This document shows positions 19,667-64,000 of a stretch of 64,000 bases of DNA, in pieces. Below the pieces are notes generated by a model. That model made no database searches and was not told the origin of the DNA. It saw only the letters and a list, made by a program, of their open reading frames with translations. Positions within the stretch are counted from its first letter, which is position 1. Each line of letters opens with the position of its first letter. Made by a program: the position numbers and the translations under genes. The DNA comes from Klebsormidium nitens. Taxonomy: Eukaryota; Plantae; Klebsormidiophyceae. The stretch spans positions 108,647 through 172,646 of the forward strand of contig DF236954.1 in the NCBI GenBank assembly GCA_000708835.1, written 5' to 3'.

Positions 19667-22600
19667 ATGTTGCAGAGGATGAATAGAGCCTTTCACCACA
19701 AGAGGACCTCTGCCGGTTTCGCTCTTAGCCTTGTCCTGCTAGTATTCGTTCAGCACAGCAGAGCAGACTATGTAGAGACTGCGCCTAGACCTGGGGCTCC
19801 GCTTCCTCCATCCATCATTCCTGGAGAATGTCCCCTGGTCTTTCTGAAGGCAGACATCCAATATGCAAAGCAGACTGCATGCTCCTCAGGACCAGGTGAC
19901 TCAGGTGAGACTCACGTTGTAATGAAGTCAAACAAACCTCTTCTACTCGTGCCACCGTCTAGGCTTACAGGCTTGCTGCAAGAGCCGTCCGTGGTATTGG
20001 GTCGGATCTTATGTGTGACATTTGAAGGAGTGACAACTCTGTAACAAGGTGGGGCCCTTCATAGTAGACACTACAACCAGCATGCCAGCAATCAAGCTCC
20101 TGTAGGCAGCAATTGTCCTAAGCAGACTTCTTCGAGAACGCACAATATCCGTTGCTGGATAAAGCTTTGTAAATATAGCAACTCTAAGACCCGGATGTTG
20201 GCTTAGTTCCATGCTGTTATCTGCTTGCGAAGCTTAGACTTCTTTGAGAGAGCTGCATTCCTGCTCTCTGATGACGCACACAGGCAGGCGTCTCTGCAAT
20301 GGTACTAATGATATGTATTGTCCATCCTCGTACTGATGCCACATGGAAGATTTGCCACAGCAAGCAGCCCTTCCCCAACGAAGTTCCTGGATTCCCGGAT
20401 CCAAGCTCAGATGCTGTGTTGCTTCTCCTGAAACGAGCAATCGAAGAGCACGGTTTCATGACTTTCAAGCTGACAATCTGCTCCCTCCTTGCCTTACCTA
20501 GGCACGTCTAACGCGATCGCTGTAAGCGCAGCTGGTGCATTCAGCAACAGCTCAATTACTTCTTGCTGCATCCATATGAAGGCAGTTCTATGGCAGGCCC
20601 GAGTGCGATATGCCAATGAGACTGGTCGCCTGCTCCTGCCCCAGGCATCCGCTGACGCTTGTATCCAGGTATATATCTTACCCTGTTTTTGATCACCTGT
20701 TGGGGTGATCACCTGCTATGTTTGTTGGTTGCCCTGTCCTGGGGTAACATTGGTTGGCGCTCTCTACACCCAGCTCCCCGGTTGAGAATAACTAATAAGT
20801 TGGGGGTCCTTAAGCCAGAATTGTATCAGTGGGGAGTGCATTGCGGGTCAAGTTCATACGGCCGCCAGAAGTGCTAACCAGCATAATCCATGGTAGACGC
20901 GAACATTCTAAAGTCAAAATGGACCCCTTGCATCTGAGATTCAAGGCAAGGTACTTGGCTCTGAAATGTCTGTGCCCCATCCTGGCTCTGGTTTGCAGAG
21001 TTTGAACACTTCAGCAATAGCTGCTGGACTACCTGCTCTCGGTTGGTGCGACATCAAAAGTCAAATGCTCTCAGAGGATGCCGGCAAAGCCTGTGGAGAT
21101 GATCTCACAACCGTGTACGATTTCTGGTCGGCATCAAGTCGGACCTTTCCAGGTATGTTAGCGATGCCAGGACCATCAATTGTGAGCCTGCCATTCTTGA
21201 CAAGCTTCGTCTTTCTGCTTGTACTCAAAGAGAACAGTATAGTACTGGCATTGAAAGCGCGCTTGTTTGGCAGCCAAGGCAGATTCATATCACATTCTAT
21301 GAGACGATGCCACGATACAGGGCTGGCCCCACTTGTTTCGTTGCGAGCAAATTTCTGAATGTGAGTTTAGACCAACTCAACTCGTTATGCAGGAGTTAAG
21401 CTTCTTGAGCACCATCTGAAGTTCGAGGTTATTAAGTTGTCAGCTGAGTGCAAGAAGATGCATCCAAAAACTTGCTCCGGTGTGTCTCTTTGTAACACTT
21501 CGCTGGTACTTGCAGGAACGGTGGGTACCAGTTGCTATGGGGAAAATGCAGATTGCGGTCTCTGCACCACCCTCATCACAAACAAGATTATGTCACTAGG
21601 CAGCAGCACGCCGGCTTTGCTGGCAACGACGTCATGCCAAGGTGAAAGCATCACTCTCTCCCGCACCTGATGCCTTTGCTTGCAAGATCTGCTGTGAAGA
21701 AGGATCTGCTGTTAACAATCTTGTTTCAAACCGCTTGATTGAAACAAGATTGCTAAAAGTGCGGCAAGTTTCTTGGGGCCTTTGATGCAACTTTTATCCA
21801 GTCGACAGATTGACCACTCTGTCTTTCAGGGCGTCCAGGTCTCCAGGAATATTGTTGCCGATCGTCGCACACAGCACAAGCTGTCATGGAAGACCTCACT
21901 TCGAATCTTGTGCTGGCTATCCACTCACGTAACCTACTTTTGGTGAGCAACATTTACGTACGCTACAAGAAGGGTTGCTCAGCAAAGATTACAGAACATG
22001 CGCTCAAAGCTTCTGACATTTTCTTTTTTTCCTGCAGATCTGGCCCAGGTCGCAATGGCTGCGGCAGCGTACCCTGTCGCCATCGCTAACGGCATTGCTC
22101 GGTGCCTGTATAACGTGGACATTGAACCCATCCCTCAAGCAAGCAAGTGCACAGCGTATGACTGGTCGAGGCAGAACTGGACGTCCATCGTCCGCAGCTG
22201 CGGAGCAGAGAGTTATCGAGCGGATCGCTGCTGTCAACTCGTACACGGACAGTACCACTTTATGCTGGTAACCGCCCTGAACAAGACGCGTTATGGGATG
22301 GACCAGGTGAGACCAGCTTCGAAGAGATGTTTGCAGCGAGCCGGGGATTTGAGGCCGGAGCACATCGATTTTGTAAATGGGCTTTGTTGACGATCAAGAG
22401 GGTCCGATCATTTTCGCTTCCATCTACTTTTCGTTGCTTAATGGCTGCAGGTACGGTCTGATAAGATAAGGGCAACTTGTTGCTTTTCCTATCTCAGACA
22501 GGCGATATGTCCTGCTGCTACCTACCAATACAATGCCTACGAGGTCTCTCGTTCCAAAAGGATTTTCTCAAAGACGATCGGGCTTCTCGTTTCTTGAAGC

Positions 22601-25600
22601 CTCTCTTGACGGCTTCCTCGAGGGCTTCTTGCCTGCGCAAAGACGTTAATCGTCTGGACCTTTCTCAGCGTAGGGATTTGGCAGCTTTCGTTTCGGTGGG
22701 TTTTGTGTCAAAAGTGCTTGGCTTCCATCTGGTAACAATTCTGCGCAACCAGGAAATATGGTTGATCCGGTCAGGAAAGTACCGACTTTCGAAGAGAGGC
22801 CTGCCTCCACTCCATACATCCTTTTCTAGGTTAGTCAATTCTAAGGTTAAGTTGTGGTGAGGTTGAAGGTAACATCGAAAAAAGCGGATCGGAAAAAGTT
22901 CACGTGCTCCGCACCCGTGCACACCCTAAACCGCCTTCCTAACTCACCCCATCCCAGTAGTAGAGCTTGAACTCAATAAACCTAATCCTGGGACCAATTT
23001 CCAATATTTTAGGGGCAGGCCGAGGTGTGCTTCTCGGAGTACAAGGCCGGGCTCGCCGCGCATGGCGTCTCCCCAGCCACGCCGGAAAGTTGCCGCGTGA
23101 CCGCCGCGACCGCCCTTCTGAACATCGGCTGCTACAACTACTCCACGCTCCAGCAGCAGGTCTCCACGCGCTACTTCCACTACTTCGACGGCAACTGCAC
23201 ACACAGCGGAGGCGGCGATTGCAGCCACTGCTCGCAAACGCTGCTCGACGTGGGGAACGAGCTTGCGAACACCACAAGCGTCGCGTACCTGAACGCGTGC
23301 CAGCAACTGGTCGTGCACCAATATTACCTGTGGCTCGCCAATGTTGAGTCAGTCCCCGAGCGCGGAAACTGTTACTACCAGTTCCCCCCGGGGCTGGAGC
23401 TCACGATGGTCCCCTTACTCCCGAGCAAAAGCGCCTCTAACATCGCACTCATAGCCGGGGTTAGTTGTGCGAGCGCGGTCGTGCTCCTTGGGGTATTGGC
23501 GATTGTTGCATTCGTCCTATGGCGACGTTATCCGCTGTACAAGGCCGAGTGGGACGCCGAGAAGAAGACGCTCGGCCGCTTGTCGTCGATACAACAGCGG
23601 GTCGTGGGGAACCGGTTGCAGGTCTTCACGAAAAGGCAGCTGAGCAAAGCGACTCAGGACTTCAGCGAGAGCCGTGTGGTTGGCGTCGGGGGATCCGGGA
23701 AAGTTTACGTTGGAGAGCTGAACGGGGACATCGTTGCAGTAAAGGACTCCACGTTTGGGTCCAACAATGATGGAGCCAAGGTAAGAAAGAACTTATTTTC
23801 TCGGGATTGAGTTACGGCTCTACATTGAAGACACGGACAGCCACTCGCATTCTCGACTTCCCCTTGAAGCAGGTTCTTGATTGTTTTGAAGCGCTCTTGC
23901 AAGACTGCCGAAGTCAGACAACTGCTCTTTTTGAAGAAGGCGTTCTCGTAGAGAAGTAGCTTCGTAGCAAGAAACCTGGACACCAGCTTATCGGGATTGC
24001 GTAACAGCTGTACCGACATGAGGACCTTTAGAGTACCTGCTTGGGCGATTGCTATATGATGGTTTGATTCATAACTTGTTCATAATTCGCTCAACTCCGA
24101 TGATTCTCGAGCAGTCCTATCGTAATTTGCGTCTTGTCGGAACGCCACATTTTATCGTCAATCCGGAAACATATGACGCTCTTTCGTTCTCACAACCTGA
24201 CAGGTATTTCTTGCCATACCACAGACCTCTCTTGCAATGATCAGAAAGCGCACGGAGTACCGGTAACAGACCTTGTGAAGGGCATCAAAGCGGACGTGAA
24301 GCTTTCCCGACTTCGTCGAAGGGCACTTGATAAGCTACTAAACCGGGTTCTTAACCCATTGATCTACCTGTCTTTGTTGCAGGAAGCATGGAACGAGGTT
24401 GCGACTCTGGCCCAGTATCGGCACCGTCATCTAGTGGTCCTCAAGGGCTGCTGCCTCACTGGTTCAAACTCCTTGTGAGGCTTCCTTTTCAATCCCATCA
24501 ACTGATCTGCAAGCGGCCAGGCTGTCGGGGCTTTTGAGTTTCCGTAGCTCTCAGCTCTTCAACATGAATTGGACTTTCAGTCGCTCTTTCGTAGGTTGCT
24601 CTACTCTGTTCTGTTGAGATTGGCAGCTCGTAGGCCACACCTCTTTTGAATGCAGTCTGGTACGTTATCCCTAAACCTTTGTACGCTTCAGACCTAATCC
24701 CTTGTCGTTGCCAGATTTGCCAGGGCACAACAACAACCTGCACTGGTTGCCGTGCCAATTTTCTGCTTGCCCCTGGGGTTACGGAGCGAAGAGAGCAGTC
24801 TAGTATAGTTTTCTTGGTTGTCAGTCAGGGATTTCCCAACAGATTGGAGAGAACGACCGCTGAACTAAAAAGTCGCTTCCCCGGGTTTAATCAAACCCAA
24901 CCCCTGAGCCCGAAGCTAACATGCTCCGCACCCATACCCACCTTTAACCCCCACCTAACCCCACCTGTCCCCGGCCGTGACCTACAACATAGCCGGTAAT
25001 TCAGAACAAAATCAAAACTAAACCGCTAAACCGATCCTGTCCTCCCTTCCGCAGCCTGGTCTACGAGTTCATGGAGCAAGGCAGCGTCGAAGACCATCTG
25101 TGCCCTACGGCGGCCGTCTCGGCTGGCCGCGCCACTGAGAGCAGTGTGCGCGCGCAGTTTTTGAATTGGCCCACCCGAGACAAGATCGCCCTGGGGACGG
25201 CCAAGGGGCTTGCCTACCTGCACGAGGTGAGCCCCGTCTTACAGGGCGGTCACAATTGAGTTCTCAGGGAAGTGGGAAACGTTCTCTGAGGGGTTCCATG
25301 CTCCCCGAGAATCTGTTTGGTCGTATTTCCGTCAGGATGCGTGGCGCAGAAGCTCAAAAGCCTCGCGTGATTCGTAGTCAGACAGATTGTCCGGGGAGGA
25401 AGCGCCAACCGTTCCTTCGTGTTGATACCGGCGCTCGTAAGGCATAGTCGTGTCGAATTCCTGGGGGAGATTCCCCTTTTTCGTCCCTGAAGGACGGAGA
25501 GTCGGTGCGCCCCGGAAAACCTATTTGTGAACGCCCAATCAGACATAAGGAGAGGCTGCAGACCAGAACTTGCGATACACACAGTGAAGCTGGACTACGA

Positions 25601-47168: not shown

Positions 47169-50100
47169 CTAAGGGATACTTTTCGCATCCTGGTCGCTCG
47201 AAATGGAGAACGCTCCGGCGCCCCCAGTGCTCAGGCTCGAGCTCTGTTGCCCCGAGGAGAGCCCCGCTGAAGTATCGGGATCGGAGGACGCCAACGAGGA
47301 GATTGTATAGAGGGTCGGGGGGCGCCTCGGAAGGCGGGGCACCTCCATCCGTCCCATGAGCATGTCCGCGCACTGCCGCATGCTGGGCCGGACGCTGGCC
47401 GCCGTGTGGACGCACAGCAGAGCAATCTGGAGAGCAAAGAAGGGGTCAGGAAGATTGATTGCACTAGAAAGCGGAGTCGAACGGCAAGAAACAGGGACGG
47501 AAGCGAACCTTTTAGGTTGGTGAGCAACCAATCCGCCATATGGTTCTGGTGCCCTCGATCTGCGCGCACTTCCTGATCGGGGCGGGCCCCGCCTCTCTTT
47601 CTCGATTGGGAATGTGAAAGCTATTGCATAGAAGTGATCAATAAACCGGCACGTGATTCACAGCCTTGTGAAAGTTGCGTTGAATCGAGTCGGCGGAGTG
47701 ATACGAAGGTGCAGAACGCTGGCCCAATCGAAAACGAACCGAGGATGCGACGGGCCCGCCTTCGCTGTTCTCAGTAACACCAGAACAAGGCAGTCTTCGT
47801 CAAAGCAAGGAGGCCGAGCCGATCGGAAAGACAGAGATACTTACAACAAGAGGACACTTGAATTGGTAGGAATCAATCTTGAATGACGTCGGATGCTGGT
47901 GGTATACGAACCGTCAATTATACTACAGGCGCCCGTGAACACTTTGCCTAGAACAACCATAGGGCGACTGCAAAGGTCGCAGTATTGCTTCCAGATTGCC
48001 GAGTACTCAAGTTGCTGTTGGTGATCTGAAAGCACCGGGGCCTGCTTCAAGATGGACGCCGGCCGAAAGTTCGTAATACAACGCCGTTCTGAGGACTCGG
48101 AACATTCCGAGACCCCTGACGAACCCCGACACCAAAATACTCTTCCTCGCAGCTCATATTGGAAGCGGCGAAGAACTCTACCACCTGACCTCGTTTGCAG
48201 CGACAGAGGTCATAAATCTGTTTTCATGGCGCTGTGAAGCCGCTATAGCTTGGTAATTGTGCGTCAGGGGACTTATCATTTTCAGTGACAGAAACGGGGG
48301 TATGCGTAGGTACGTGGGCGCCATTCTTCAGTGCGACATGATCAAATCTCCTCGCGACCGTGACCGCGAAACCCCTTCTTGACGTCGCCGGCCCATCCCT
48401 TTCCCGCCGCCCTATGGAGAGCTGAAGTACGCCCTGACGTACTCTGAGAATCAAGAAAAAGGCGACTTCTCACCTTGGTCATGCGCTCCATGTTCGCCGC
48501 GTACTCGTGCCGCTCCCCTTCGAGCCGCGGGTCGATCAGCTGCTCTAGCTCGTTCCGTTCCGCTAAGGACCACGCCCATTCTGGTAGGTGGATCTGACGG
48601 AATGATGACAAGGACGATATAAGGTTTTCAGATTTAGATCAACCTCTGTTGGGCTTGCAGAATTGTGCTTCTTTTTGAGACGAAAGGCAACCAACGAGGA
48701 AGCGATGGCGGGTTCTTGCTTGAAAGACTCTCTGAAAAACCGTGCACCTTATTAACGTTGTGGCAGCCTGCGACTTCGAAGCGGTGGAATTTTTAAGGTA
48801 CGAGACGAACTAATGCTGTTGAACGACCAGGCTTTTAGCAGGGCAACACGATTCCGATCTGGTTGACAAGGTTGACGGCGAAGGTCCACCAGTGCCGTGG
48901 TATCCGCCTGAATGGACCGCGGATTGCGGAAGCATTTCCGCAACCGTCCCCCTTCGCAGCTGTTGTCAAACAGAGTGGAGGTAATCAAATGAACATCTGG
49001 TCAAAGAGGATTGTGAATACCAGGCGCCCAGCTATGCCTTGCCAGCGTCAGTCCTTGGCTCAAGAACTAGAGCGGAGAGAGTGCCGTTTTGAGCGCTTAC
49101 TTGCTCTTCTGGTGCGTTCGGTTGGGTGGGCCGTCTCCCAGCCACGAGGCAGAGCAGCACCACTCCGAAGCTGTACACGTCACTCTTCTCGGTGGCCATG
49201 TACTCGGGGCTCAGGTAGCCCCACGTGCCGGCGATCGCTGCGGGCAACGGAGCAAGGATTGAGATTCATAAGAGCTTTTCATTAATGAGAAAGAAGTCTA
49301 TCGGGCTGACGAACGAGTGATCAGGCGGATGAGATGGAATCCAGGTGAGCTGAAGCAGGACTCGCTTAACCCGTTCCAGCATCGACACGAGGAAACTCGA
49401 GGCAACTTAGTGAGAGGAGTGCTCGACGGATTGTGAAGCTCAGGAAGATGTCGAAAGTGCCAGAATCTGCCGGTATGTGTCTTGAAGAACCAAGCACAAA
49501 GGAGAAAGACAAGATTTACTGAGTATCTACTTTCGTGGAACTTCTTGTAGTGAATCCGCCGAGAAGCGAGTCCTAAACCCTTGCCAAGGACAAGCCACCC
49601 ACCTGTGGTGACGTGTGTGTCCTGTGGGTCCGTCCGCCTTGCAAGGCCAAAGTCGGCTAGCTTCGCTTCGAAGTCGTTTGTTAGCAGGATATTGCTTAAC
49701 TTCACGTCGCGGTGAATACACCGCGGCTTGCACTCCTGAGGAGACAATTTGTAGCTTTTACCGTCGGACCGTTGTTGGATCAAAGGAAAAGCATTTGCTG
49801 TAGGACCCGCAAACAAATGCTCAGGTGAAACTTAGAAATGACTGAGAGCAGAGAATCTGACATGGTATCATGTTCTGCTTGCAAACATTTGTATAGCTTC
49901 AAACCACTTCTCGAAAAAGGATGCAATGAAAGAACGAAGCCAATACACCCTCATTAAGGAGTGTGATCGGTAAGAGTCAATGTCAGCGGACAGTGAGGCG
50001 GGCCACCCGGCCTCGAAACTCCAAAACATAAGCTCAACCTCACGACGTATCAGCAGATTGTTCACTTCTCCTGAAACGTCTTTTACCTTCCTCAATACGT

Positions 50101-53100
50101 TCAAAAGTTCGAAAGGTACCAGCCTCTCCCGACAATGAAAATCGACTCACCTCGTGCAGGTAGGCAAGCCCCTTGGCCGTCCCTAGGGCGATCTTCTCGC
50201 GGGTGGGCCAATCCAAGAAGTGAGCGCGCACACTGTGCTCAGCGGTGCGGCCAACCGGGGCTGCCGGGCACAGGTGGTCGTCGACGCTGCCTTGCTCCAG
50301 AAACTCGTAGACCAGGCTGCAATAAGAAGAAAATTTGATGGTCCAGGAACTGCCTCCGGGTTGTTCTCTCGTCTATAGACATGCCGAATACCGCTGAAAG
50401 ACTGCAAAGGCGAGCATTGCAAGGTGTTGTTGGACTATGACGGATACGAGGGGATGCGGCTGACGTTGTGAGGATGAGAAGTAAGAACGACACGAGGAGA
50501 TTCGAAAGAGATCTGACGTCGGTATTTCTACGAGCCACCAAACGTGACCACCAAAAAGCGGGTAGGAATTACGACTTTGTTAACGAGCTGAAAAAGCGGG
50601 AATGTGGGGGCGCGAAGCCAGACAGTTTTGCTGGTTGCAACTATACAGATCAATTGATACAGTGGCAGAAGGAGTGCCAATCTTACAAGGAGTGCGATCC
50701 GGAGATGCAGCAGCCCTTGAGAACCACCAGATGACGGTGCCGATACTGGGCCAGGGTCGCAATTTCGTTCCATGCTTCCTGCAGTAAGCACAGGTAGGAA
50801 TCAAGCACTATCGAACCAGCTAGTGGCCAACGAGTGCCCTTCGACCAGATTGGAAATGGTTCATCTGGTTCAATGCGTTCTACATGGACGGGACATAGAC
50901 TGTTCTCGACCCCGTGCAGGGACGAGTTGTGCTACTGCAAGGAGACGACCTGTCAAGAAGAAGTTGAACAGCCACGAAGCGTCAACGTTCACGGAAGGAC
51001 TGAAGAAGGGGAGGAAGCCAGCCGATTGATAAGGATGCGATAGCAAAGACATTGGTTTGAGCAGACGATGAAATGATCGAACTTACACCTTAAAGCTGCA
51101 CCTGCTCAAGCAGGACAAGTTGCAACTTTCTTCCGTTTCTGGCTATCCTGCAACCACCCCCATGAGCTAGTGGCTTCGCATCCTCAGCTGCCAAGCCGGC
51201 TTCACCAAAAAACGCCTCTTAAACGAATAATTGCCATCCACAGCCCTGCAGGACGCTTCTAAGCATTGAAACCAAGCCAGTCGAGAAATAAAACGAGCTT
51301 TGAAGACGACGTTTGCGTCCTCTCGTTTCAGAAGCTTTTAACTCAACCTTTTGTAGAGCTGGCCTCGCACGCGTCTTACCTTGGCTCCGTTCTTGTTGGA
51401 CCCAAACGTGGCGTCCTTCACCGCAACCACTTCCCCGTTCAGTTCTCCGACGTACACTTTCCCGGAGCCCCCGACGCCCACCAAACGGCTCTCGCTGAAG
51501 TCCTGGGTCGCTTTGCTCAACTGCTTTTTGGTGAAGACTTGCAGGCGCGATCCAACAAATTTTTGGCGCAGCGACGACAGGCGGCCGAGCGTCTTCGTCC
51601 GAGCATCCCACTTGCCCTTGTACAGCGGATAACGCCTCCAGAGGAAGAAGGCAGCACCCGCTAGTACCACAAGAAGCACAACCGCAGTACTAAGCCCGGC
51701 TATGAGCATAATGTTGGACGGACTTTCGCCCAGGGGCAAAATTGTGACCTCTATCCCCGGGGGCAACTGGTATCGACAATTTGCTAGCTCGGGGGCTAAC
51801 TCAAGTCTGGCCACCCACTGGTAATACTGGTGCACGGCCAGCTGTTGACACGCTTTGAGGTACTCAGAATCGGTGTTAATTGCGAGCTCGGTTCCAACGT
51901 CGAGGAGCGTTTGCGCGCAATGGCGGCAGTTGTCTGGTGACGCTTGTGTGCAATTGCCAGCAAAGTAGTCAAAGTAGCGGACGGGAATTTGCTGTTGGAG
52001 CGTGGTGTAATTGTAGCAACCGATGTTCAGGAGACCGCTCGCCGCTGTCACGTCGCAAATCCCTGACCCTGACCACGGTATGTAGATCACTTTAGCTTCG
52101 AGGGCGGCCATATACTCCAAGAAGCAGATTTCCGCCTGGCCCTGCAAAAAAGAACAAATTGACTATAATCAGAACCCCTTGTAAGGGTGGCTGTACCAAC
52201 GATGTCTGGATAGAACTAGACGTTGGCCTGCCCCTGAGCTGGAGGAAAAACAATTCAACCAAACAGATGATCGCAGACTCTTCGCAGACCGGTTTCGATC
52301 GGCTACAACAAGGGGTGCATGTTGCAGAGAGCCGTACCAAAAAGATTTGGTAGCCAACAAGAAGACCGTGCGGAAAACTTATATTGAGAAAATGTCCGGT
52401 ACATCTGACATCTTTCGGCAGAGAAGCCTCTCCAAAAAAGATGATAAAAAATGAGACCTTCACGTTTTAGACCACTGTCTGGTGGTATAAAACCTCGTAG
52501 TCATGTTATGGTACGTAGCAGTACTCAAAGTAAATGGTGTCTTATTGACATGTGGAAAGGATGGAAGCCCCATCAATCTGACAAGCCCACCTGCAATCTT
52601 AAGCAATCTCGTGCATAGGTGAGTTGGGAGCCAATAAGTCAGATCCTAATGTCAGACAATGCCCACAACGCTTGTGCATGTAGCCGCTTGACAAGGGCCA
52701 GTCGCAAACCCTCCGATTGCTCTTGACATCCGTGCAAAGGTCGTCTCACCTGGTCCAAAACATGATTCGTCTTATTTATGCTGGCTGCCAGCATCATTTG
52801 GTACTGTCCGGCTATCAGATTACAACAATCAGTTCCAGACTCCCCCGGCCCAGTGCAGCTGTAAAGCATCGACGTCCAGTTTTGCCTCGACCAATCGTAG
52901 GCCGTGCACTTGGGTGCTTGAGGGATGGGTGCAATGTCCACGGTGTATAGGCACCGAGCGATGCCGTTTGCGATGTCGAGGGGGTAAGCGGCCGCGGTCA
53001 TTGCGACTCGGGCGAGATCTGCAGGAAATGAGAATGTACAAAACTTTTCACGCATGCTTCCGGTGGTTCTAACAAGCCAGTCTCCTCTCGGCGCAGGTGT

Positions 53101-55328
53101 GTGCTGCTGGACAGAAGCATGTTTCTCAAGTGGATAGCCAGCACAATGATGAGGATCCGCCGCATAGATCATCATTTCGGATTCAAATACCAGGAAAATT
53201 GCACACAGATCTGAATCATTTTCATCAGGCGCAAGGAATCTAGTGGTCATTTTAAGAATACAAGCCCAGTGCAAATGAGCTGCAGATCTATCAGATGGGA
53301 GGACTGTGCATCAACTTTGGAGGCAAGGCCCTTCGCCTGTCACACGCATTGGTGGTATACAGCCATCTATTTGCTTTCAGTTTCCAATCGCTATTGCCAG
53401 CATGGAGGGGCACGTACCGGCTCAATGCATCCCTCGTTGTGAATGCGTTCTGCGAACTCAAAATCGCCTTGTTCCATTTCCGCGCATAGGATAAAAAGAA
53501 TTCTCTGTTTCGAATCTTAGCAACCGACATCTTCTGCAAGAAGCAATCTACGCACTCATGGAGCTTACCTTGACATGACGCCGTCGCTAACAAACTAGTG
53601 GTGCTGCTGCTTAGTGACATAGTCTTGTCTGCGATGAGGGCAGTGCAAAGACCGCAGTCTACATTCGCCCCAAAGCAACTGCTCCCCACCGTTCCTGCAA
53701 GTATGAGCACTTGGAGGTGCTTCAGGATACACAGCGACACAATAAAGCAATGTTTTTGACGCTTCGTCTTGCCCGCAGCTGCCAGTAGGACTACAAAATT
53801 CTTGAAGTTTGATGAAGCCCTTTCTAGCCTGACTCCCACAGATATCTTTTGAGTAGATGCAAACTTCGAAACACTTGAGATGGGTAAACTATTTCCAGCG
53901 TATTCAGCCTGTCCTCACTGGCATCCTCTCTTAGTGTCTGAGACAAGAATAACACCGCCTTGGCAAGATGAATTGCAAACTCTGTCCTTCACTAGGCACA
54001 AAATTGGCAAGCAGAAGACACACCTCCGAGCTTGGCAGGCTTCACAAATATCAGTCATGGCAGCGCTGACATACCTGGGAAGGTCCGATTCGATGCTGAC
54101 CAGAAACCGTACACAGTTGTGAGATCATCTCCACATGCTTTCCCCGTGTCCTCTGAGAGTATATCGCTCGTACTTTCGCACTTGCCAACGGCAGGCAGCT
54201 CAGCAGCTGCTGCCGAACTGTTCAAATTCTGCAAAGAGAGCCGCTTAGGAATCAGTGCACAGAAAGTTTTGCGCCGAGTGAGATGCCGGTTTTGTCTTTC
54301 GGGACTGCTCATCTTTATCATGGGCTTTGTGATTCGAATCATGGGCTACCAATTTGAACCCTGACCTGGAATGCACTCCCACAGATACTGGAATGACTCA
54401 AAGAACCCCTGCTCTCCCCGTCAACCTAGACCCTGAGCCTAAGGAGCGCAACTATGTGGCATCAGAACCGTGCAACTAAAACGTAAACGAGCCAGTATGC
54501 AACCAGTAGTCGAGTGAGATCAATACCTGGATACAAGCATCGGCAGATGCCTGAGGCAGCAAAAGGCGCCCAGTCTCATTGGCATACCGCACTCGGGCCT
54601 TCCAAAGGACTGCCTTCATTTGATCGCAGCAGGTGGTACTTGAGGGACTGGCAGTTGTGACAGCTGTGCCTAGAAGGCCCACGACAGCATTGCCTGACAG
54701 CCGAGGAGCGAGCCAATGTCAGCTTCAGGAGTATTAGTTGGCACAGAAGCCTGTCACTGCAATTCTTTCAGAATTGAACGAATCCACCTCTCTATACAGT
54801 AAAATTAAGTTTTTTGAGGAGGTGTGCGGGTGAGACCAAGGCAACCCTCAAACTTGAAATGCTCAATGTGGAAATCTCCATTGAGCAATCAGCATTTCCT
54901 ATTCTCAGACTCTAAACAAAAAAGCTCAAAAACGCTTGCTTGCCATCCAGACTGTAGTCACATGGACGTGCATGACCTCATGTCACATGTTAGAGCATGA
55001 CTTAGTCAATTACCGCGGAGGATTTGAATTTCAAAGTTTGAAAGAGGAACTATTCGAAACCACTAATAGCAGAGTTAGGCAATCTGAACACGACTTCCAG
55101 CTCACTTGTGGAGCATGCAGTCAGCTTTGCGTACTGGATGTCTGCCTGCAAAAAGACCAGGGGACATTCTCCAGGGGAGATGGGTGGAGGAAGAGGAGCC
55201 CCAGGTCTAGGCGCAGTTTCCACATAGTCTGCTCCGCTGTGCTCAATAGATACCAGCAGCAGTAAGCTAATAGCGAAGCCAACAAAGGTCCACCTGTGGC
55301 AAAAGGCTTCATTTAGCCTCTGCAACAT
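47169..55328 (-). CDS. Receptor-like kinase RLK-B, inverted paralogue of RLK-A (double SPARK-like ectodomain; 4-aa deletion after subdomain VIII)
   Basis: Exons 55328-55106, 54693-54527, 54228-54075, 53694-53569, 53018-52750, 52141-51380, 50778-50687, 50316-50151, 49735-49603, 49237-49101, 48593-48474, 47426-47169. Intron positions and phases match RLK-A, with equal exon sizes of 167, 154, 126, 269, 92, 133 and 120 nt. The reading frame is intact throughout. Confidence 0.92.
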
Positions 55329-56219: not shown

Positions 56220-59200
56220 TCATGCCATGTCAGGTGCGGTGCCGTTGACATACGTCATGAACTTGTCATACACCAGCTGCCCGATCGGGGCGCACAGGTT
56301 CCGGCTCTCCGTGATCGCCGCCTGGAAATGCACCCCCCCCTGCAGCCGGCTTTGGCCACATGCCGCCGCCCAGTCGCTCCACGTGGCCCAGCTCAGCGTG
56401 AGGTTCTGCCCGGGGGTGATCCCCGGCTCGACGGCGGAAGAACCGGCGGGTTTTGCGTACGGCGTCCCCAGCGCGTCGGAGCCGTAGAACGCGCGCGCGC
56501 TCGCGGCGACGGCCGCGCAGAAGCACGCGGAGCCGGAGGTGTAGTCGGAGTGGGCCTGCGTGCGCAGGTACGACTGCCACTCGGACCCGTTCACCTGCAA
56601 AGGTCAAGTCGTATTTTTGATTTGGAGCGTGTCTTGGTAAGAAAAGACAGCATGAACCGTGAGCGTTGGCGCCAGAACGCAGAGGCCACTCGGACCCGTT
56701 CAACTAGTGCAAAAGGTCAAGTCTTACTCTCGATTTGGACCAGCGAGTCTTCGGAAAAAAGACAGCATGAACCGTGAGGTTTGGCGCCAGAGCGCAGAGG
56801 CAACTGCCACTCGTACCCGTTCACCTGCGAACAGCAAGCAAACTGGTTTTGGTTGAAGCTTGGATAGACCAGTGAAACGCGGGCGCGCGCCAGATTGTCT
56901 CCTTGAATGGGCACAAAATATCAGAGATCGGACACGTTTGACTCATATGGAAAGCAAAAGGTTTCGAAGTTGCGGCCAGAGTGAGATAAGTACGTGGGCG
57001 GCTTCGCTCCGAAGCACGGACAGCACGACTGGAATTTGGACCCGTCCGTTTTGACTAGCAACCCGGAGCGTGTGCGAGATTGCGGCCATCTGAATGTATG
57101 TAGTGAGACGTGGATTGAAGTTTCACCCGGATCCGATCAACTCGCTAATGGCAAGAAAACGACGTGTAAGAGTCGTCGAGGGGTAACAGAAGGCGGGTGC
57201 GCCTTCTCTCTAAAGCGCGAACACGAAAATAATTCGGGCCGATATGATCAGAGTTAGCAAACTCATGGTCGACCTCTGAGTTGCAGCAAAACAAGACTAC
57301 GACGTTGACGGAAGAGATTCGAACAGGGGCTTGTTGCTTTGTGAAAGTCGGTGCCAGAAGATTCGATGCCAGGCCGATCTATGGAGCCGTTCCACAAAAG
57401 GGCTGTAGACCAATAACTTGCTTAGATAAAGGTTGTCTTTCTAACTGGCCAATGTATTTCTAGCTTGCATCGAAGAAGACACGAGCTCAGGTGATGACGG
57501 AACTTACCTGAGTAGGTCCAAGGCCCGGACCCCCCCAGGCAGTGACAAACTCGTTCTGGTACAGATACCTTATGGCGGTGGTCGGCCGTACGCTATCGTA
57601 CTTGGTCTGCGAGAAGAAAGCAGCGCAAGTCTGAGACTTTATAGTTTGCTGAAGCTTTCAGGAGCTTTAAAAGAAGATCGTAGATGCAGAAAGAACTTTC
57701 AGCGTGCATTTGGAATCATGCAAGGAAGAAGTAAGGCTGGCAATGGCCGCTTGAACAGTCGACGTCATGGCAAGTGTGACGTGAGCACACAGCATAAGAA
57801 TCCTGAGCGAGCTCTGATGGAAAAGAACAGAAACGTTTTCCCCTTTGCAATGCGGATGTCGAGGACCTCTTTCTCGAATCATTCCATTAAAAAACCGAAG
57901 GACCTGATTATTATCTCAGTCTGCTGTCGACTTCACCAAACGAATGCATCGGGATTCGCCCTCACCTTCTGGTACCAGACCGCGATTAAAGCATCCGTCA
58001 GCGTGAGGCCCGTTAGGGCTGTGATTTTGATGAAGTCGTCGAGGTTGTCCTTGCCATACTTGGGCCCCAGGTAGAGTACCGAGTCGAAGCCCAGGGAGAG
58101 CAGCTTGTTGTCGAAGTGCTCCACCGTCATCTTCTGGGCATCTGCATTCGACGTCGGCTGAAACTCATCAGAGTAAAGTCGAGCATTGGTGAAGAAAGGC
58201 GTCGAACAGGACCGTTCTTCAAATGGTGGCCCCACGTCAACGGGGCAGAATGCCTTAAGTCGGCTTCGCGTCGCAGCCAAAGCGCCTTGTTGTCAAAACA
58301 AACGACTTCAAGCATTCACAGGAAGGCTTGGCTGCAAACCAGGTTCGATAACCGGAATTCAGTCTGGTTCTTTGACCAATAACCGCGTCATAGCCATGTT
58401 GAAAACCTGGTTACTGCTCGGGTCTGGTCATTGGACAGTTAACCAGCTTCGAACCAGCCCGTAACCGAATGTGGTTAACCGCCAAAAAACCCTGTGATTA
58501 AAGTAAGCGAGATTGATAGACGGAGTTCCTTCAATGCACGTCAGTATACAGCAAGTCAGTTTCGAAGAACCATCTCCTTTCGTACTTCGGCACGGAGCGT
58601 CTTGGTTCCGAACCGGAGCCAAAACAGGAGTCTCCACCGGAGCCTTCATTCTCTCAAGTTTGCACGAGGAGAACCGGATTTCTTGCCGCAACGCCTTTTA
58701 CAAAGTGGAAAGCTCCGGTTTGTCCGCCACTGTATACAAACGAGGGGTCCAGTCCGGTCAGCTTTGGGTCCAAGACGCCCAATGACTCATTTCCAACGGA
58801 CCGCTGAGCGTAAATCTCACCAGTGAGGTTCCGGGAAGCCGCAAGGACTTCGTCAGCCTGATCCTTGTAAGCGGGGGCGCTCGCGTTTTGGCTGGCAACG
58901 GGCGGGGGGACCGAAAAATTGGACGCTCTGCTGTACGAAAAGGGCGTGACGTGGCCCCCCTGCGGAGTCAGGTGCTGCTGTTCGACGAAGAACCCGAGGC
59001 CGAAACGCGCGTCGACCAGAGGCTGCCACCTTAAGATGCAAAAGGAAGGGGGAGGAAACCTTGCAGTTTTTGCGCACGTACGAGTAAAGCCCGGTTCTTG
59101 ATGCTGCCTACGGCCCGAATTAGCCGAGTGTCCGGACAGAGCGGTTTTGGCTTCTGATTCTGGTCCTTGATAAAGAGAGCCAGGAAGCAATCTTCAAAAC

Positions 59201-62200
59201 GGCGAAGTACATTCAGAAATTCTCCGTCTGCTGTTCAACTCAGAACTTTTCGCGATCACGACCTCCTTGCAACCTCCCTCTGCACGATCCGGGTGGCCGT
59301 AACAGCTGTCTCAGGAATGTCACTGATGCGGACTGCTTATTTAGAACATCGATAGCAGGGTGACTTAATCTAATATCCGACCATGACCTGATGGACTTTA
59401 GTTGCAAACTAGGTACCTGGACTGTATAAAATCAGTTGATTGAAATGATTCCAACTCTTAGTTGAAAAGCGCTCCAATCAGGACGGCATCGGTTAATGTC
59501 TACGTCTGATGCGAACAAATTTTCTTGGTTGCTCTGACACGTACAAATGGCTCACCTCGTTGGGTCTTTTAGTTCGTGAGCCGTGTTCACGGGAACGTTT
59601 CCCGTGTAGTCTGAGTAGTTGCTGCGGAAACTGCCCACTTGGCCAGGAAGGGACCCCGCTTGGTTGAAGCCGTCCTGTAGCCTGGATAAAGTATCGGACA
59701 CGCTTTTTGGTTCAGAGAGTATGCCGAAGCTTGTTGAAAATGAGCAGAAGCCCGAGCGACCACGTCTACCAGAGATTGGCGGTGAGCTGATCAGGACCGC
59801 GCTGATCGATTGTCGTTTGTCAATCGATATCAGCAATTTGTTGACTCCTTTCAATTCGTCAAAGGTGCTTAGGAAAGTTCAGAATGGACAATGTACCTGG
59901 GCGGCGGTTCCGCTTTATGAAGAGATGCCTAGAAAGTATCCATATTTCGTGCTTTTAAAACTTTTCTGGAGTTGAAGCTTCTCTCCTTGCTTTCAAACTG
60001 CACCATGGCCTTGCAAAAAAAGAAGTCCGCTTCATCGTAGACATATGGCACACTTCCTTTAAGATTATTTTTAGCAAAATTGGGCCAATACAATGACCCA
60101 GAAGAAACCATTCATATGCCAGGATATGTGATAATTACAGATGTGATCTGGCAAGCGACCAGCCTTTTCAGTGCGTCAGATTGAGAGGACCGTGTTTGCT
60201 GGAAGAGCTCACAAGTATGCTGTGACAGCAGCGGCCGCCAAGTTTCCCACGCCAACAGGCGATGTCGGATCTGTGCTAGTATTGTTGGGGTCCAGGCCGG
60301 CAGCAGTCATCCCAGCAGAAGCAACTGCGAGAGAGAAAGCAGATTGCTTCAGATTTCTGTCGACGAACGAGGAGTTTTTATAGGATTCTGGAAAGCAGAT
60401 TCTTTAGCGCGGACATGCTTGTCTAGATCGAATCAGACACGATGATCAATGAGCTGGCTAGCTGCTTGACGGATCAAGAACCAAAAGCTTCGTGCTTCGG
60501 ACTGCTATTTTGTGAATCTGATACTGAAACAACTGGCACGGCCAATCATTATTTCCACAACCTCTTTCATCGGTCTCTGAAATATATCAGTAGCTCAAAA
60601 GGTTGCCTGAAAAATGGTCTCTCAGGACCCACCTTTCGCTCCTTGTGGGAAGAGGCTCTGCAGGACTCGGAAAACGGAGTACACGCATGCCAGGTTTTTG
60701 TTCTCGTCCGTAAACTCGGAAGACGGTCGCCGGAGTTTGCTTCCCAAGAAGAGTCCCAGAGAATTCGGCGTGTACGCAACCCAGGCCTGACATAAAGGGA
60801 GAGGGATCCCCTTCAGCAATGATAGGACGAGGATATTTGGTCGAGATTACCCTGATCTTCCAATTCACGTGATGCTTATTGCCAGAATTTGAGAGGTCTT
60901 ATCACGTTCCGTAAAGGTATCCGTCCACAAATTCACACTTCTTCACTCGCTATCCCGGAAGAGATTCTTCGGTCGAAGGAAGAAGAAGGGAATAGAAACT
61001 CTTGATTGAAGGGACTTTGTCTCGCATCTTGGTGGGCACCAGGAACAATTCGCGAGCGAGGTACTCTTTACTACAAAGAAAAGGAGTCCAGAAGAAAACA
61101 GATGTCTACACCAACCAGCAGCTTACCTCGTACAGAGCAATGTCGATCGCTCCCGTCACGCGCAGCAGCAGGGGCACTTCCAAGGTGGGGAGCACAGTCC
61201 GCACGGGGCCGAGAATCGTCAGGATGGTTGCGTAGTACGGGCGCGGTGCTGCTGGTGCCGGCGCCGGCTGTGGTGCTGGGCATGGTAAAGAGAAAGGACA
61301 GGTAGTCTCGATTCTACGAAGGGTTAAAGCGCATGAAGGGTAACGGCAACACCTAACTAAAAATCTAAACCCAATGGTTGCACGCTCCCCACCCGTACCC
61401 ACCCTAACCCCCAAGCTAACCCTACCCGTTCCAGTTACCCTTCATGGACCTTTCCCTTCATGAACTCGAGCGGAATAGAAAGGACAGGTAGTCTCGATTA
61501 ACTGTTGTGTTTCCGCTATGGTGAATTAAAACGTGCCCGGGGAGCGGGTGAGATTAGATTAAGGGGAGGGGTACGGAGCCTGTCGACTTTAGTCTTGGGT
61601 TTTCTGAGGCCGGGGAAGTTGATCGAAAGGCCTGCCGCCTAACTCCAAGCCTAATCGAGACTTGGGAAGGAAGATGTGGGCTGTATACGTAAGCAAATCT
61701 CTGTGTTTGAAACCTTTACCGGTGGAATCAGGAGCAGAGGTGTCGTGGAAGTGAAGAGGCCTTGTAGTGTAGGAGAGTAGAATAAGATCCAGGTCTGTAG
61801 AGCATATCTCTGGAACCAGCACATACTTCAAGGTATTGAAGTAGATCTGAACGAATGGTAGAAGCGGACAAAGGCAACTGATACTTGACGTGAGGTGACG
61901 AGAGATCGTGACGAGGGCACTAATAGCAGTACATGCTAGTACCATATGAGACACTCGAGCAGAGTTATTTGGTGGCTTTTGAAACTGTTGCACGGAGAGT
62001 GAGCAAACAAGACACAGCGGGACTGCGCTTTCCAGGCCAGTTGCATCCAGAGCAATCTCAATCCTAGCAAGCTAAGTTGCTCGAGGGTTGAAAACAGATG
62101 TTCAAGTAGACTACTAGCTGCTCTAGGGGTCACTTGCATCAAACTCACCCATCTGGTGAAGCTTTCTGTGGCTAGCCACAGTACTCGTAACTACCTCATC

Positions 62201-62296
62201 GGCAGAGACTGGTATGGCAGTGTTGCTCAAAAGGCACATTCCCGCCAGCAGGAAGAAGAGCAGAGTGGTGGAGGACTTTGAGGATCCCATCTTCAT
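56220..62296 (-). CDS. Secreted vanadium-dependent haloperoxidase-like protein (PAP2/VHPO fold; NapH1/DUF6851-like type)
   Basis: Exons 62296-62149 (signal peptide), unresolved small exon(s) at 61850-61320, then ~61318-61127, 60786-60633, 60324-60213, 59681-59556, 59029-58821, 58141-57966, 57606-57508, 56594-56220. Motifs: LLLRVTGAIDIALYEAWVAY, RRPSSEFTDENKNLACVYSVFRVL, GLDPNNTSTDPTSPVGVGNLA, QDGFNQ..NYSDYTGNVPVNTAHELKDPTRWQP, and the vanadate-site motifs DALIAVWYQK-x6-RP, HSDYTSGS, SRLQGGVHF. Confidence 0.88.
56575..56830 (-). repeat. ~115-bp tandem triplication of the last acceptor of the haloperoxidase gene
   Basis: CACTCG(G/T)ACCCGTTCA(C/A)CT occurs at 56578, ~56689 and ~56809. AAAAGACAGCATGAACCGTGAG..TGGCGCCAGA occurs twice. 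Confidence 0.9.
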
Positions 62297-62314
62297 ACAG
62301 AGAATTGGTGGCGG

Positions 62315-63370
62315 CTGCAAGGAAGAAAACAGTACTCGTTGGTTTACTTGAAAAGCTTGGTGCATTGCCGAACACTTCGCAATCTCTAGAGGTCTTTTCG
62401 CATTTGAAACTTTGGGTAATTGGTGAGAAAGAGTTTTTTTCGTTTACAGGCTGGCATTGATTGGAAGCAAGTAAAAGGGTCTCTAATTAAATCTAATAGA
62501 TGGTTTTGGAGCATGTATGCGTGTCATACTTACCGAAAGCATTGCAGCCAACTTCTGAGAAAGGGACACTGCGACTAATTCAACCAATCCAGAGATTCTA
62601 AGGGAGTTAGAACTGCTTAACAAATAGCATTGGCATTGCATGCATGGTCCAGCAGAAACTGAATCAACTGATAGCATGACTACTCTCGAGGGCCCCAGTA
62701 GGCAAAATACAGCCATTGCTTACCTTGCAAACAATCACAACCACAGAGGAAGGTGATGTCTTGTTCTCGCCTGGCAATGCTGCAAGCAGCAGGCAAGTCG
62801 GCACCGCAAGCCAACTATGAAGCTATTCGTGACCCCTCACAAGTTTTCGCTACTTACCTTTGCCAATTGCGACACCCAGAATTTACTTCAGGGCTGATCA
62901 GGGTTGAGGGAGTCGGCACCAAGTCAGTAGGAGTCCCTGTGAAAGTGGACGTTGTGGAAGAGGCAGTCGTGAATGCAGTTGGGAAATTGGACCTTTGTGC
63001 GACGAGTTGACTGCACAAATAGAAGGAGGTGATCAACTGAGAACTGGATCTGGGTTGCTGGATCTTGGTTGCGGAGAATGAGCGCTTTCCAAGGCGGAAG
63101 CACTGAATCCCTTATGAGTCTTTGCTGAAAAGCTCGTCCGAGTGACTGTTACTCGAAGTGCTCGGAGATCCTGTAAGATTCTGAGGGTTTTGATTTCCTG
63201 CATGCAGGACTCCTGCTATACACTTCTCTGATGCACTGGTGATCTAGAATGCCCAAAAGTCGTTGTCAAGAATTGAAGTGCACTGCAAACAATCATCATT
63301 GGTCCTTAATCAGTACAGCACAGATTTCCAGTACAAAGGTTGCAGCTTCCTTGCTGATGTACCTAACTTA
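62315..63370 (-). other. Probable spliced multi-exon 5' leader of the haloperoxidase gene
   Basis: Strong donors (GTAAGT at 63370 and 62857, GTAAGC at 62723) and pyrimidine-rich acceptors (63011, 62780, 62315) define candidate exons 63010-62858 and 62779-62724, upstream of the acceptor 18 nt before the ATG. No join in frame with the signal peptide was found. Confidence 0.5.
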
Positions 63371-64000
63371 CGGTACGTCTAGGTAGTATCATGTGTGACA
63401 TCAGCTTGTTGACTTATTGACTTCTTGCTCGTCGAGAGAATGTGGCCCTGCGACGTTGTCCGTACTACGCTGTGGCCGGTAGTACGTCATATCGTGATTT
63501 GCCACCCCCCCCGAGCGGCGACTCGCGAGTCATACATAGAAGCCAATCATAGCGCATTAGGTCATACCTGATTGACGTCCATAATGACCATGACGTTGTA
63601 AGAAGCACGTGCAGGCTGGATATGTCGGATCGTGCCAAAGTGACCACTTTCCGACCGTCGATAGGGGTCAATAGGGATATGAACTGACTGAACCGGGATC
63701 TGGGGCCCGGTTGGAGCAATGATTGCATGATTGAAAATCATCCAATGAAGCTACGTCACTGTCGTACGTACAAATATTCGTTTGTCCTTAGTCAACAGAG
63801 CGGGCAGAGGCGCGGGGATCTTCGAAAGCTTCTCGTCGAATGAAATGCACGGTTCGCCTTATCTCCAGGACCTCCATCTATGTAGTTTTAAATTGTAGTT
63901 TTAGCTCGTAAAACTACATTTTGCTGATGTCAAAACTACATTCGCCTTACGTCATCAAATTTGTGGTCGCCGCGAAATAATACTATATTTTTTTAAAAAA

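Follow-up and report, generated by a model that had tools for sequence, protein, structure and literature searches.

A vanadium haloperoxidase gene in Klebsormidium nitens

The 64,000-nucleotide stretch analysed here (positions 108,647 to 172,646 of scaffold DF236954.1, assembly GCA_000708835.1; hereafter the window, whose own numbering is used for the exon coordinates) comes from Klebsormidium nitens, an alga of soil and fresh water, and contains, on its minus strand, a gene for a vanadium-dependent haloperoxidase (VHPO). Joining nine minus-strand exons (56220-62296) gave an open reading frame (ORF) of 1548 nucleotides encoding 515 amino acid residues, and all eight introns have GT-AG borders (Table 1). 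A previous interpretation, made from the letters of this DNA without database searches (the sequence-only reading), had proposed a secreted VHPO of bacterial type with about nine or more introns; the gene is indeed intron-rich, although the introns number eight. To our knowledge, selective VHPOs, which perform regio- and stereocontrolled halogenation via a lysine haloamine, have been characterised from bacteria only. The K. nitens protein is a new member of this kind of VHPO, in an unexpected host and with a distinct pocket.

To obtain evidence of splicing, contigs from K. nitens sequencing runs were placed on positions 56350-62340. Three exon-exon joins were matched exactly, without mismatches, namely those across introns 3, 4 and 8; introns 3 and 4 were both joined by one contig spanning exons 3, 4 and 5, and the acceptor of exon 9 at 56594 was confirmed by an RNA contig. 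As the introns are skipped in these contigs, they derive from spliced RNA. A tandem duplication (56576-56805; period of about 115, 2.1 copies, 83% match) lies over the boundary of intron 8 and exon 9, and the upstream duplicate near 56830 retains an acceptor-like cag/GTGAACGGGT, the use of which would bring in an early stop codon. In the RNA contig, the true acceptor is used and not this duplicate. A 224-nucleotide contig from one K. nitens run lies wholly within intron 5 (59227-59450, no mismatches) and could represent unspliced pre-mRNA, carry-over of genomic DNA or an independent transcript.

Orthologues were found in two more Klebsormidium data sets. In K. subtile (EukProt EP00243), a Trinity ORF matches 273 residues at 93% identity and runs continuously across the junctions of exons 4 to 9. 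A 9.3-kb Logan contig from a third, Klebsormidium-like sample (L092) carries an intact ORF, in which exons 2 to 9 are equal in length to those of K. nitens and GT-AG introns occupy the same eight positions, with diverged intron sequences; exon 1 has an insertion of 21 nucleotides (7 residues) and keeps the N-terminal layout. Between K. nitens and L092, the ratio of nonsynonymous to synonymous substitutions (dN/dS) was 0.084-0.096 at a dS of about 0.46 (465 codons), and 119 of the 162 differences were at third codon positions. This low ratio, together with the third-position bias, indicates that the gene is under strong purifying selection.

Protein family and fold

Two Pfam domains were detected in the 515-residue protein: DUF6851 (PF21167) at residues 93-233 (E = 8e-38; 130.4 bits against a cut-off of 27) and VCPO_2nd (PF22778) at residues 348-510 (E = 1.6e-36; 126.5 bits, cut-off 27). 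The PAP2 family scored below its threshold on exon 9 (14.3 against 27.2 bits) and was not matched by the full protein at E<=0.01, and a search of NCBIfam with the protein gave no family match. The best sequence matches in the Protein Data Bank (PDB) were esVHPO of Enhygromyxa salina (9PTR; 6.7e-100 over about 430 residues), XhnO11 (9L8X; 2.8e-95), NapH1 (3W35; 3.7e-84) and NapH3 (8CXL; 2.2e-79). The next was a Zobellia iodoperoxidase at 1e-3, and the solved vanadium bromoperoxidases (VBPOs) of algae gave no phmmer match at E<=0.01.

The AlphaFold2 model has a mean predicted local distance difference test (pLDDT) score of 80.8 and a predicted template modelling (TM) score of 0.81, with disorder at residues 1-49, where pLDDT is below 50, and at 196-210. 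Foldseek placed XhnO11 and NapH3 first (E = 1.9e-34 and 4.2e-33; 40% and 36% identity), and the target-normalised TM scores to 9L8X (XhnO11), 8CXL (NapH3) and 3W36 (NapH1) were 0.84-0.87, with root mean square deviations of 2.4-2.8 Å. The Curvularia vanadium chloroperoxidase (VCPO), CiVCPO, was matched at an E value of about 1e-9, and the VBPOs of red and brown algae at 0.1-0.3 with TM scores of about 0.2. On the basis of the Pfam, PDB and Foldseek results, the protein is a VHPO of the NapH1/esVHPO kind and is far from the classical algal enzymes, as the sequence-only reading had supposed from its motifs.

NapH1 and the related meroterpenoid chloroperoxidases of Streptomyces share with the Klebsormidium protein the fold (TM of about 0.85 at 35% identity), the S-G-S motif and the Lys-Ser dyad described below. 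However, the enlarged β-hairpin of NapH1 is absent from the Klebsormidium protein (a 9-residue gap in the alignment), and its gene does not belong to a meroterpenoid cluster, unlike those of NapH1/Mcl24-type VCPOs. NapH3 is a non-halogenating relative that has lost S-G-S and G-G-V-H-F, both of which are kept in Klebsormidium. The classical VHPOs (CiVCPO and the Ascophyllum and Corallina VBPOs) and the brown-algal enzymes of bacterial type belong to the same superfamily and use the same vanadate chemistry, but the classical enzymes have S-G-H, lack the N-terminal DUF6851 bundle and the Lys-Ser dyad logic, and in the case of CiVCPO are only 15-16% identical to the K. nitens protein. Assignment to the classical algal type of Ascophyllum and Corallina was rejected, on its Foldseek values and the lack of a phmmer match.

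Active site and substrate pocket

The roles of the catalytic residues were taken from esVHPO, for which they have been established by cryo-electron microscopy and mutagenesis (10.1101/2025.10.24.684477); the alignment comprised 80 bacterial loci, with 160 other loci from GTDB set aside. The vanadate site of the K. nitens protein is complete (K358, R365, S411, G412, S413, R474 and H480), and K358, R365, S411-G412, R474 and H480 align with K373, R380, S427-A428, R490 and H496 of esVHPO; the counterparts in CiVCPO are K353, R360, S402-G403, R490 and H496. The vanadate-site motifs named in the sequence-only reading were all recovered in the assembled ORF: K-x6-RP is split between exons, with K358 ending exon 7 and R365 in exon 8; S-G-x (S411-G412-S413) and R-x5-H (R474-x5-H480) are both in exon 9; and Ser occupies the position of CiVCPO His404. 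At the esVHPO columns K329, K373, R380, S427, S429, R490 and H496, the 80 bacterial loci show no variation, and Klebsormidium is identical at each. Two of these columns form the haloamine Lys-Ser dyad, K329/S429 in esVHPO and K324/S427 in NapH1 (10.1101/2025.10.24.684477); the K. nitens dyad, K312/S413, is kept in K. subtile and L092. The tunnel Leu (L316; esVHPO L333) and the Gly at the pocket entrance (G317; esVHPO G334) are also retained. Over the vanadate, dyad, tunnel and entrance columns together, the bacterial loci vary little or not at all. The position of esVHPO Glu327 is Asp in Klebsormidium, as in 68 of the 80 bacterial loci.

The pocket itself is different. T340, G344 and V420 stand in the places of D355, N359 and H436 of esVHPO, which are Asp in 66, Asn in 65 and His in 64 of the 80 bacterial loci, and K. 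nitens, K. subtile and L092 all have the same three replacements. In the VHPOs that act on alkyl quinolones (AQ-VHPOs), D355 is strongly conserved and is needed for all C2-alkyl quinolones, and the H436A mutation almost abolishes bromination (10.1101/2025.10.24.684477). Because of these replacements, we do not file the protein as an AQ-VHPO, and its substrate is probably not a 2-alkyl-4-quinolone but another extracellular or cell-wall compound. By analogy, the enzyme probably works as AQ-VHPOs do, passing a trapped halogen to a bound, though different, substrate. An enlarged interconnecting β-hairpin is said to separate VCPOs from VBPOs in alignments (10.1101/2025.10.24.684477). After the RWQP motif, NapH1 has 4 + 5 residues more than K. 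nitens, which has the short form of esVHPO and XhnO11; this likeness to bromoperoxidase-type relatives is a weak hint at a preference for bromide or iodide rather than chloride.

The resemblance to esVHPO and the other AQ-VHPOs (9PTR/9PTS; HZ11-VHPO, raVHPO, omVHPO and lpVHPO) thus covers the DUF6851 + VCPO_2nd architecture, the vanadate ligands, the dyad, the tunnel Leu, the entrance Gly and the short hairpin, and extends to the lack of a biosynthetic cluster; the signal-peptide-like N-terminus of Klebsormidium may correspond to their secretion signal. The differences are the Thr/Gly/Val pocket, the eukaryotic gene with its eight introns, and a phylogenetic position outside the bacterial clade (see below).

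Two sets of relatives stood out in the pocket and dyad columns. The locus of Actinomadura alba (L048, 1001-2281) is the only one of the 80 with both Thr at the D355 column and Val at the H436 column; since it lies firmly inside the actinobacterial clade, its likeness to Klebsormidium is probably convergent. Another DUF6851/VCPO_2nd subgroup, made up of P0111 (L090, 1375-2886) and its relatives P0079 and P0117, has lost the haloamine Lys, and P0111, on a compact, bacterial-looking contig, has lost the vanadate His as well. Its members are likely to be non-halogenating derivatives.

N-terminus and the public annotation

The N-terminal segment is basic at its start, continues with a hydrophobic core (residues 10-24; Kyte-Doolittle values up to 2.8) and then has a VSA/DE site. 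Nine N-x-S/T sequons are present in the protein, where the sequence-only reading had noted several. These features suggest that the protein is secreted.

The 515-residue product is identical to residues 982-1496 of GenBank GAQ77888.1 (KFL_000050250, "hypothetical protein", 1496 residues). The first ~975 residues of that entry contain no Pfam domain and map to positions equivalent to 65422-70851 of the window numbering, inside a Mutator-like element; the region concerned by the fusion takes in 62297-64000 of the window and the sequence beyond it (L001, 10001-18612). The model uses an acceptor 20 nucleotides upstream of the VHPO start codon, and its joining intron of about 3.1 kb (62317-65421) is the longest in the model. 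No contig from the K. nitens runs covers the fusion junction (62150-62340). As a signal peptide in the middle of a 1496-residue protein is implausible, KFL_000050250 is probably a chimeric annotation in which 981 upstream residues have been fused to the VHPO; it should be split, with the first 981 residues assigned to the neighbouring Mutator-like region.

Phylogenetic position

Homologues were searched for with P0088, with the 515-residue protein and with an eukaryote-enriched profile of 12 sequences, and the best 120 matches of each search, out of at most 8000 candidates, were considered. With few exceptions, the matches listed were bacterial or metagenomic. Among them, the closest proteins by identity (46-49%) were bacterial or metagenomic, the bacterial ones being VHPOs of the alkyl-quinolone type from Acidobacteriota, Myxococcota and Gammaproteobacteria, in contrast to about 35% for Streptomyces NapH1; the actinobacterial affinity suggested by the sequence-only reading was thus not borne out. 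The two best of these matches lie in compact prokaryotic gene contexts, and relatives were present in 240 GTDB genomes from at least nine phyla. Broad occurrence in Viridiplantae, which had been named as an argument against a foreign origin, was not seen: the best 120 matches of the three protein and profile searches included no homologue from other Viridiplantae or elsewhere in EukProt.

A search with exon 9 revealed eukaryotic homologues of low identity in Willaertia magna, Pharyngomonas kirbyi, Balamuthia mandrillaris (two paralogues) and another EukProt transcript. In Willaertia and Balamuthia, the genes (L086, 3001-4465; L087, 3001-4655; L089, 3001-4590) have truly eukaryotic surroundings and contain one intron or none, and the two Balamuthia paralogues are 41% identical to each other. 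The proteins of Balamuthia (KAL6072155.1, annotated as 'Vanadium-dependent haloperoxidase', and its paralogue), Willaertia (KAL9649587.1) and Pharyngomonas (a transcript) resemble that of Klebsormidium in being nuclear-encoded, in having DUF6851 and VCPO_2nd, and in retaining K, R, S, R and H of the vanadate site and the dyad Lys. They differ in that they are only 31-37% identical to K. nitens and that several have Thr for the dyad Ser and lack the Gly corresponding to G334.

We reconstructed a maximum likelihood tree (LG+C20+F+G4 with posterior mean site frequencies, PMSF; 65 rows by 501 columns), which is unrooted and in which the bacterial sampling is biased to the best matches of the query. 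It contains a split, supported at 100/100, between 51 bacterial sequences and Klebsormidium with 12 others, among them the protist sequences named above. The Klebsormidium stem measures 1.46 substitutions per site in this tree (1.4-1.7 across trees), so long-branch effects are possible. The approximately unbiased (AU) test rejected the union of Klebsormidium with the nearest bacterial clade (delta lnL 47.8, P = 0.0062), and 9 of the 11 eukaryote-like rows, but none of the 55 bacterial rows, share with K. nitens an insertion of one residue at its position 113. A quick tree and a tree without eukaryotes gave no supported bacterial sister group for Klebsormidium; when the eukaryotes were removed, it joined the next longest branches on the bacterial side. 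In a FastTree analysis of 110 rows, the eukaryote groups came apart and Klebsormidium branched deeply on its own. In BLAST comparisons, each eukaryote matched proteins of bacteria better than those of the other eukaryote groups. Klebsormidium shares no intron position with Willaertia, whose intron falls at codon 144 (phase 1) and corresponds to K. nitens residue 182, or with Balamuthia (codon 324).

Origin of the gene

The gene was very likely acquired from a source foreign to the green lineage, before the divergence of the Klebsormidium species sampled, and this source is likely to be ultimately bacterial. The old bacteria-to-alga transfer proposed in the sequence-only reading is thus supported in part: a foreign source is likely, but Klebsormidium falls outside the sampled bacterial clade in the PMSF tree, and the AU test rejects its union with the nearest bacterial clade. 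The chances of a direct bacterial donor and of a route that went through other eukaryotes, or was shared with them, are about equal. As an alternative to direct uptake, the gene may belong to a eukaryotic clade of NapH1-like VHPOs that is older or spreads laterally and that also includes genes of Heterolobosea and Amoebozoa; this we regard as quite possible, if somewhat short of an even chance. The strongly supported split that sets Klebsormidium beside the protist homologues, the AU result and the position-113 insertion speak for such a clade. On the other hand, all the rows concerned are very long branches (1.4-4 substitutions per site), which makes attraction between them a real risk, and long-branch attraction could lie behind the position of Klebsormidium in the tree. 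The move to the next longest bacterial-side branches once the long rows are taken out, the separation of the eukaryote groups by FastTree, the BLAST affinities to bacteria, the unshared intron positions and the preferential sampling of bacterial best matches also count against an ancestral eukaryotic clade. Brown algae offer a precedent for uptake, as their vHPO genes are thought to be bacterial in origin (10.1101/2024.02.19.579948). As a more specific and tentative proposal, to which we give clearly less credence, Klebsormidium may be the green-lineage member of a hitherto unrecognised eukaryotic branch of Lys-Ser-dyad vanadium halogenases, together with free-living Heterolobosea and Amoebozoa, with its own Thr/Gly/Val pocket and with regioselective extracellular halogenation of an algal or microbial metabolite as its function; if true, streptophytes would thereby gain their first example of selective halogenase chemistry.

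Proposed function and alternative explanations

We consider it fairly probable that the locus is a functional nuclear Klebsormidium gene for a secreted, selective VHPO of the NapH1/esVHPO type, with the enzyme activity assigned by analogy. The structure and splicing of the gene, its conservation, the fold and every catalytic residue were observed directly or in the model; secretion is predicted, and vanadate loading, halide oxidation and selectivity would follow from the characterised relatives. With the steps carried over from esVHPO and NapH1, H480 would form the covalent bond to vanadate, and K358, R365, S411, R474 and the backbone of G412/S413 would keep it in place. Hydrogen peroxide would convert it to peroxovanadate, which would oxidise a halide, and the electrophilic halogen would be caught as a haloamine on K312, the Lys of the dyad with S413. 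A short hydrophobic tunnel (L316, G317) could then lead the halogen to a separate pocket that holds the organic substrate. This pocket is neutral and hydrophobic (T340, G344, V420), in contrast to the Asp/Asn/His pocket of the alkyl-quinolone enzymes.

Several points weigh against this interpretation. GenBank fuses the VHPO to 981 upstream residues, a fusion that, if genuine, would put the signal peptide inside the protein. Exon 1 is matched by no RNA contig (62150-62340), so the 5' end and the secretion signal, which the sequence-only reading had also proposed, are predicted. The VHPO appears to be expressed at a low level in the K. nitens samples, since RNA coverage is sparse and consists of few short contigs. 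L092 has Val at the position of Gly412, a change that is probably tolerated, as 4 of the 80 bacterial loci have the same residue. Bromide is also scarce in freshwater and soil habitats.

Other explanations of the gene were weighed against the same evidence. An enzyme without selectivity, releasing HOBr, HOI or HOCl into the wall or mucilage for antimicrobial defence, detoxification of H2O2 or cross-linking of the wall, roles suggested for the VHPOs of brown and red algae, would need no more than the complete vanadate site for halide oxidation and the predicted extracellular location; the remodelled pocket is also compatible with HOX release, because pocket mutants of esVHPO still produce diffusible HOI (10.1101/2025.10.24.684477). 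We hold this to be unlikely in view of the retention, under purifying selection, of K312/S413, L316 and G317, which in selective VHPOs capture the oxidised halogen and guide it on, and of pocket residues that are conserved among Klebsormidium species and not decaying. More doubtful still is a true AQ-VHPO, a secreted quorum-quencher that would brominate bacterial 2-alkyl-4-quinolones (HHQ, HQNO) at C3 and shield the alga from quinolone producers. The nearest characterised relatives are AQ-VHPOs, with esVHPO the top PDB match and identities of 45-47% to raVHPO of Rubrivivax albus (L069/P0248), HZ11-VHPO of Microbulbifer sp. (L051) and omVHPO of Thalassolituus maritimus (L071), and such enzymes are typically secreted and encoded outside biosynthetic clusters (PMC11312541), as appears to be so in Klebsormidium, where secretion is predicted. 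Nevertheless, its three pocket residues are replaced, it stands across the fully supported split from the bacterial clade that holds the AQ-VHPOs, and its union with the nearest bacterial subclade is rejected by the AU test. A protein that does not halogenate, either a PAP2-like acid phosphatase or an enzyme such as NapH3 on the same fold, seems very improbable. VHPOs and PAP2 phosphatases have a common fold and the same set of K, R, S-G-x, R and H motifs, acid phosphatases appeared as weak Foldseek matches beside the sub-threshold PAP2 score on exon 9, and NapH3 is a precedent for the loss of halogenation within the family. However, the motif-2 His of the phosphatases and CiVCPO is Ser in Klebsormidium, NapH3 has S-G-F and A-G-A-H-F where Klebsormidium has S-G-S and G-G-V-H-F, and all the vanadate ligands and the haloamine Lys are intact. 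A PAP2 lipid phosphatase, against which the sequence-only reading had cautioned, was accordingly rejected on the S-G-S motif and the Pfam score. The bacterial identity of the nearest proteins and the chimeric 'hypothetical protein' of the public annotation might suggest bacterial contamination or a dead pseudogene, to which we assign a negligible chance. The eight spliceosomal introns (three of them confirmed by RNA), the position on a 515-kb scaffold with eukaryotic genes on either side, the orthologues with conserved introns, the intact ORF, the dN/dS of about 0.09 and the composition of the gene (GC of 0.61 in the coding sequence and 0.75 at its third codon positions, against 0.48 in the introns) exclude both and agree with the sequence-only reading that this is a gene of a green-lineage genome.

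The published surveys consulted treat selective VHPOs as bacterial and their secretion signals as mainly bacterial. In the searchable literature, we found no report of a VHPO in Klebsormidium or any streptophyte alga and nothing on DUF6851 or XhnO11; the one paper on Klebsormidium and haloperoxidases concerns unrelated genes of horizontal transfer. The intact, expressed and constrained gene in a streptophyte alga near the base of the land plants is a testable case of such chemistry in the green lineage, and together with the uncharacterised homologues of free-living amoebae and heteroloboseans it widens the known host range of this enzyme family. The altered pocket suggests a new substrate class and may be of interest for biocatalysis.

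Features of the gene and its surroundings

The positions of the exons and of the residues discussed above are listed in Table 1.

Table 1. Exons and selected codons of the K. nitens VHPO gene (positions in the window)
Feature	Position	Strand	Content
Whole VHPO gene	56220-62296	-	9 exons, 8 GT-AG introns; 515 residues
Exon 1	62149-62296	-	Start codon(s) (ATG at 62296 or 62290), signal-peptide-like segment and linker; no homology to bacterial VHPOs
Signal-peptide-like segment	62201-62296	-	In exon 1; residues ~1-32
Exon 2	61127-61275	-	Pro/Ala-rich linker, then beginning of N-terminal helical bundle
Exon 3	60633-60786	-	DUF6851 profile positions 9-57; intron 3 downstream (60325-60632)
Exon 4	60213-60324	-	DUF6851 profile positions 64-94; GLDP...GN motif
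Exon 5	59556-59681	-	End of DUF6851; YSDYTG..PVNTA..DP motif
Exon 6	58821-59029	-	Interconnecting region; short esVHPO-like β-hairpin, not enlarged as in NapH1
Exon 7	57966-58141	-	Haloamine Lys K312, tunnel residues L316/G317, pocket residues T340, T343 and G344, vanadate Lys K358
Codon K312	58104-58106	-	Exon 7
Codon T340	58020-58022	-	Exon 7
Codon G344	58008-58010	-	Exon 7
Codon K358	57966-57968	-	Final codon of exon 7
Exon 8	57508-57606	-	Vanadate Arg R365 (57586-57588) inside TKYDSVRP
Exon 9	56220-56594	-	H406, S411-G412-S413, V420, R474, H480, stop codon
Codons S411-G412-S413	56529-56537	-	
Codon V420	56508-56510	-	
Codon R474	56346-56348	-	
Codon H480	56328-56330	-	

The neighbours of the VHPO gene are a receptor gene with SPARK and protein-kinase domains and the Mutator-like element. 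The former, downstream on the minus strand (47169-55328; L001, 25524-33683), encodes an 868-residue receptor kinase with SPARK and Pkinase domains and is the second SPARK-type gene of the window, the other lying at 19667-23400. Within the VHPO gene, two segments, at 61380-61426 in intron 1 and at 58430-58496 in intron 6, were matched by RNA-run contigs of high depth whose flanks are unrelated to the locus; they resemble fragments of a transcribed, dispersed repeat within the introns.

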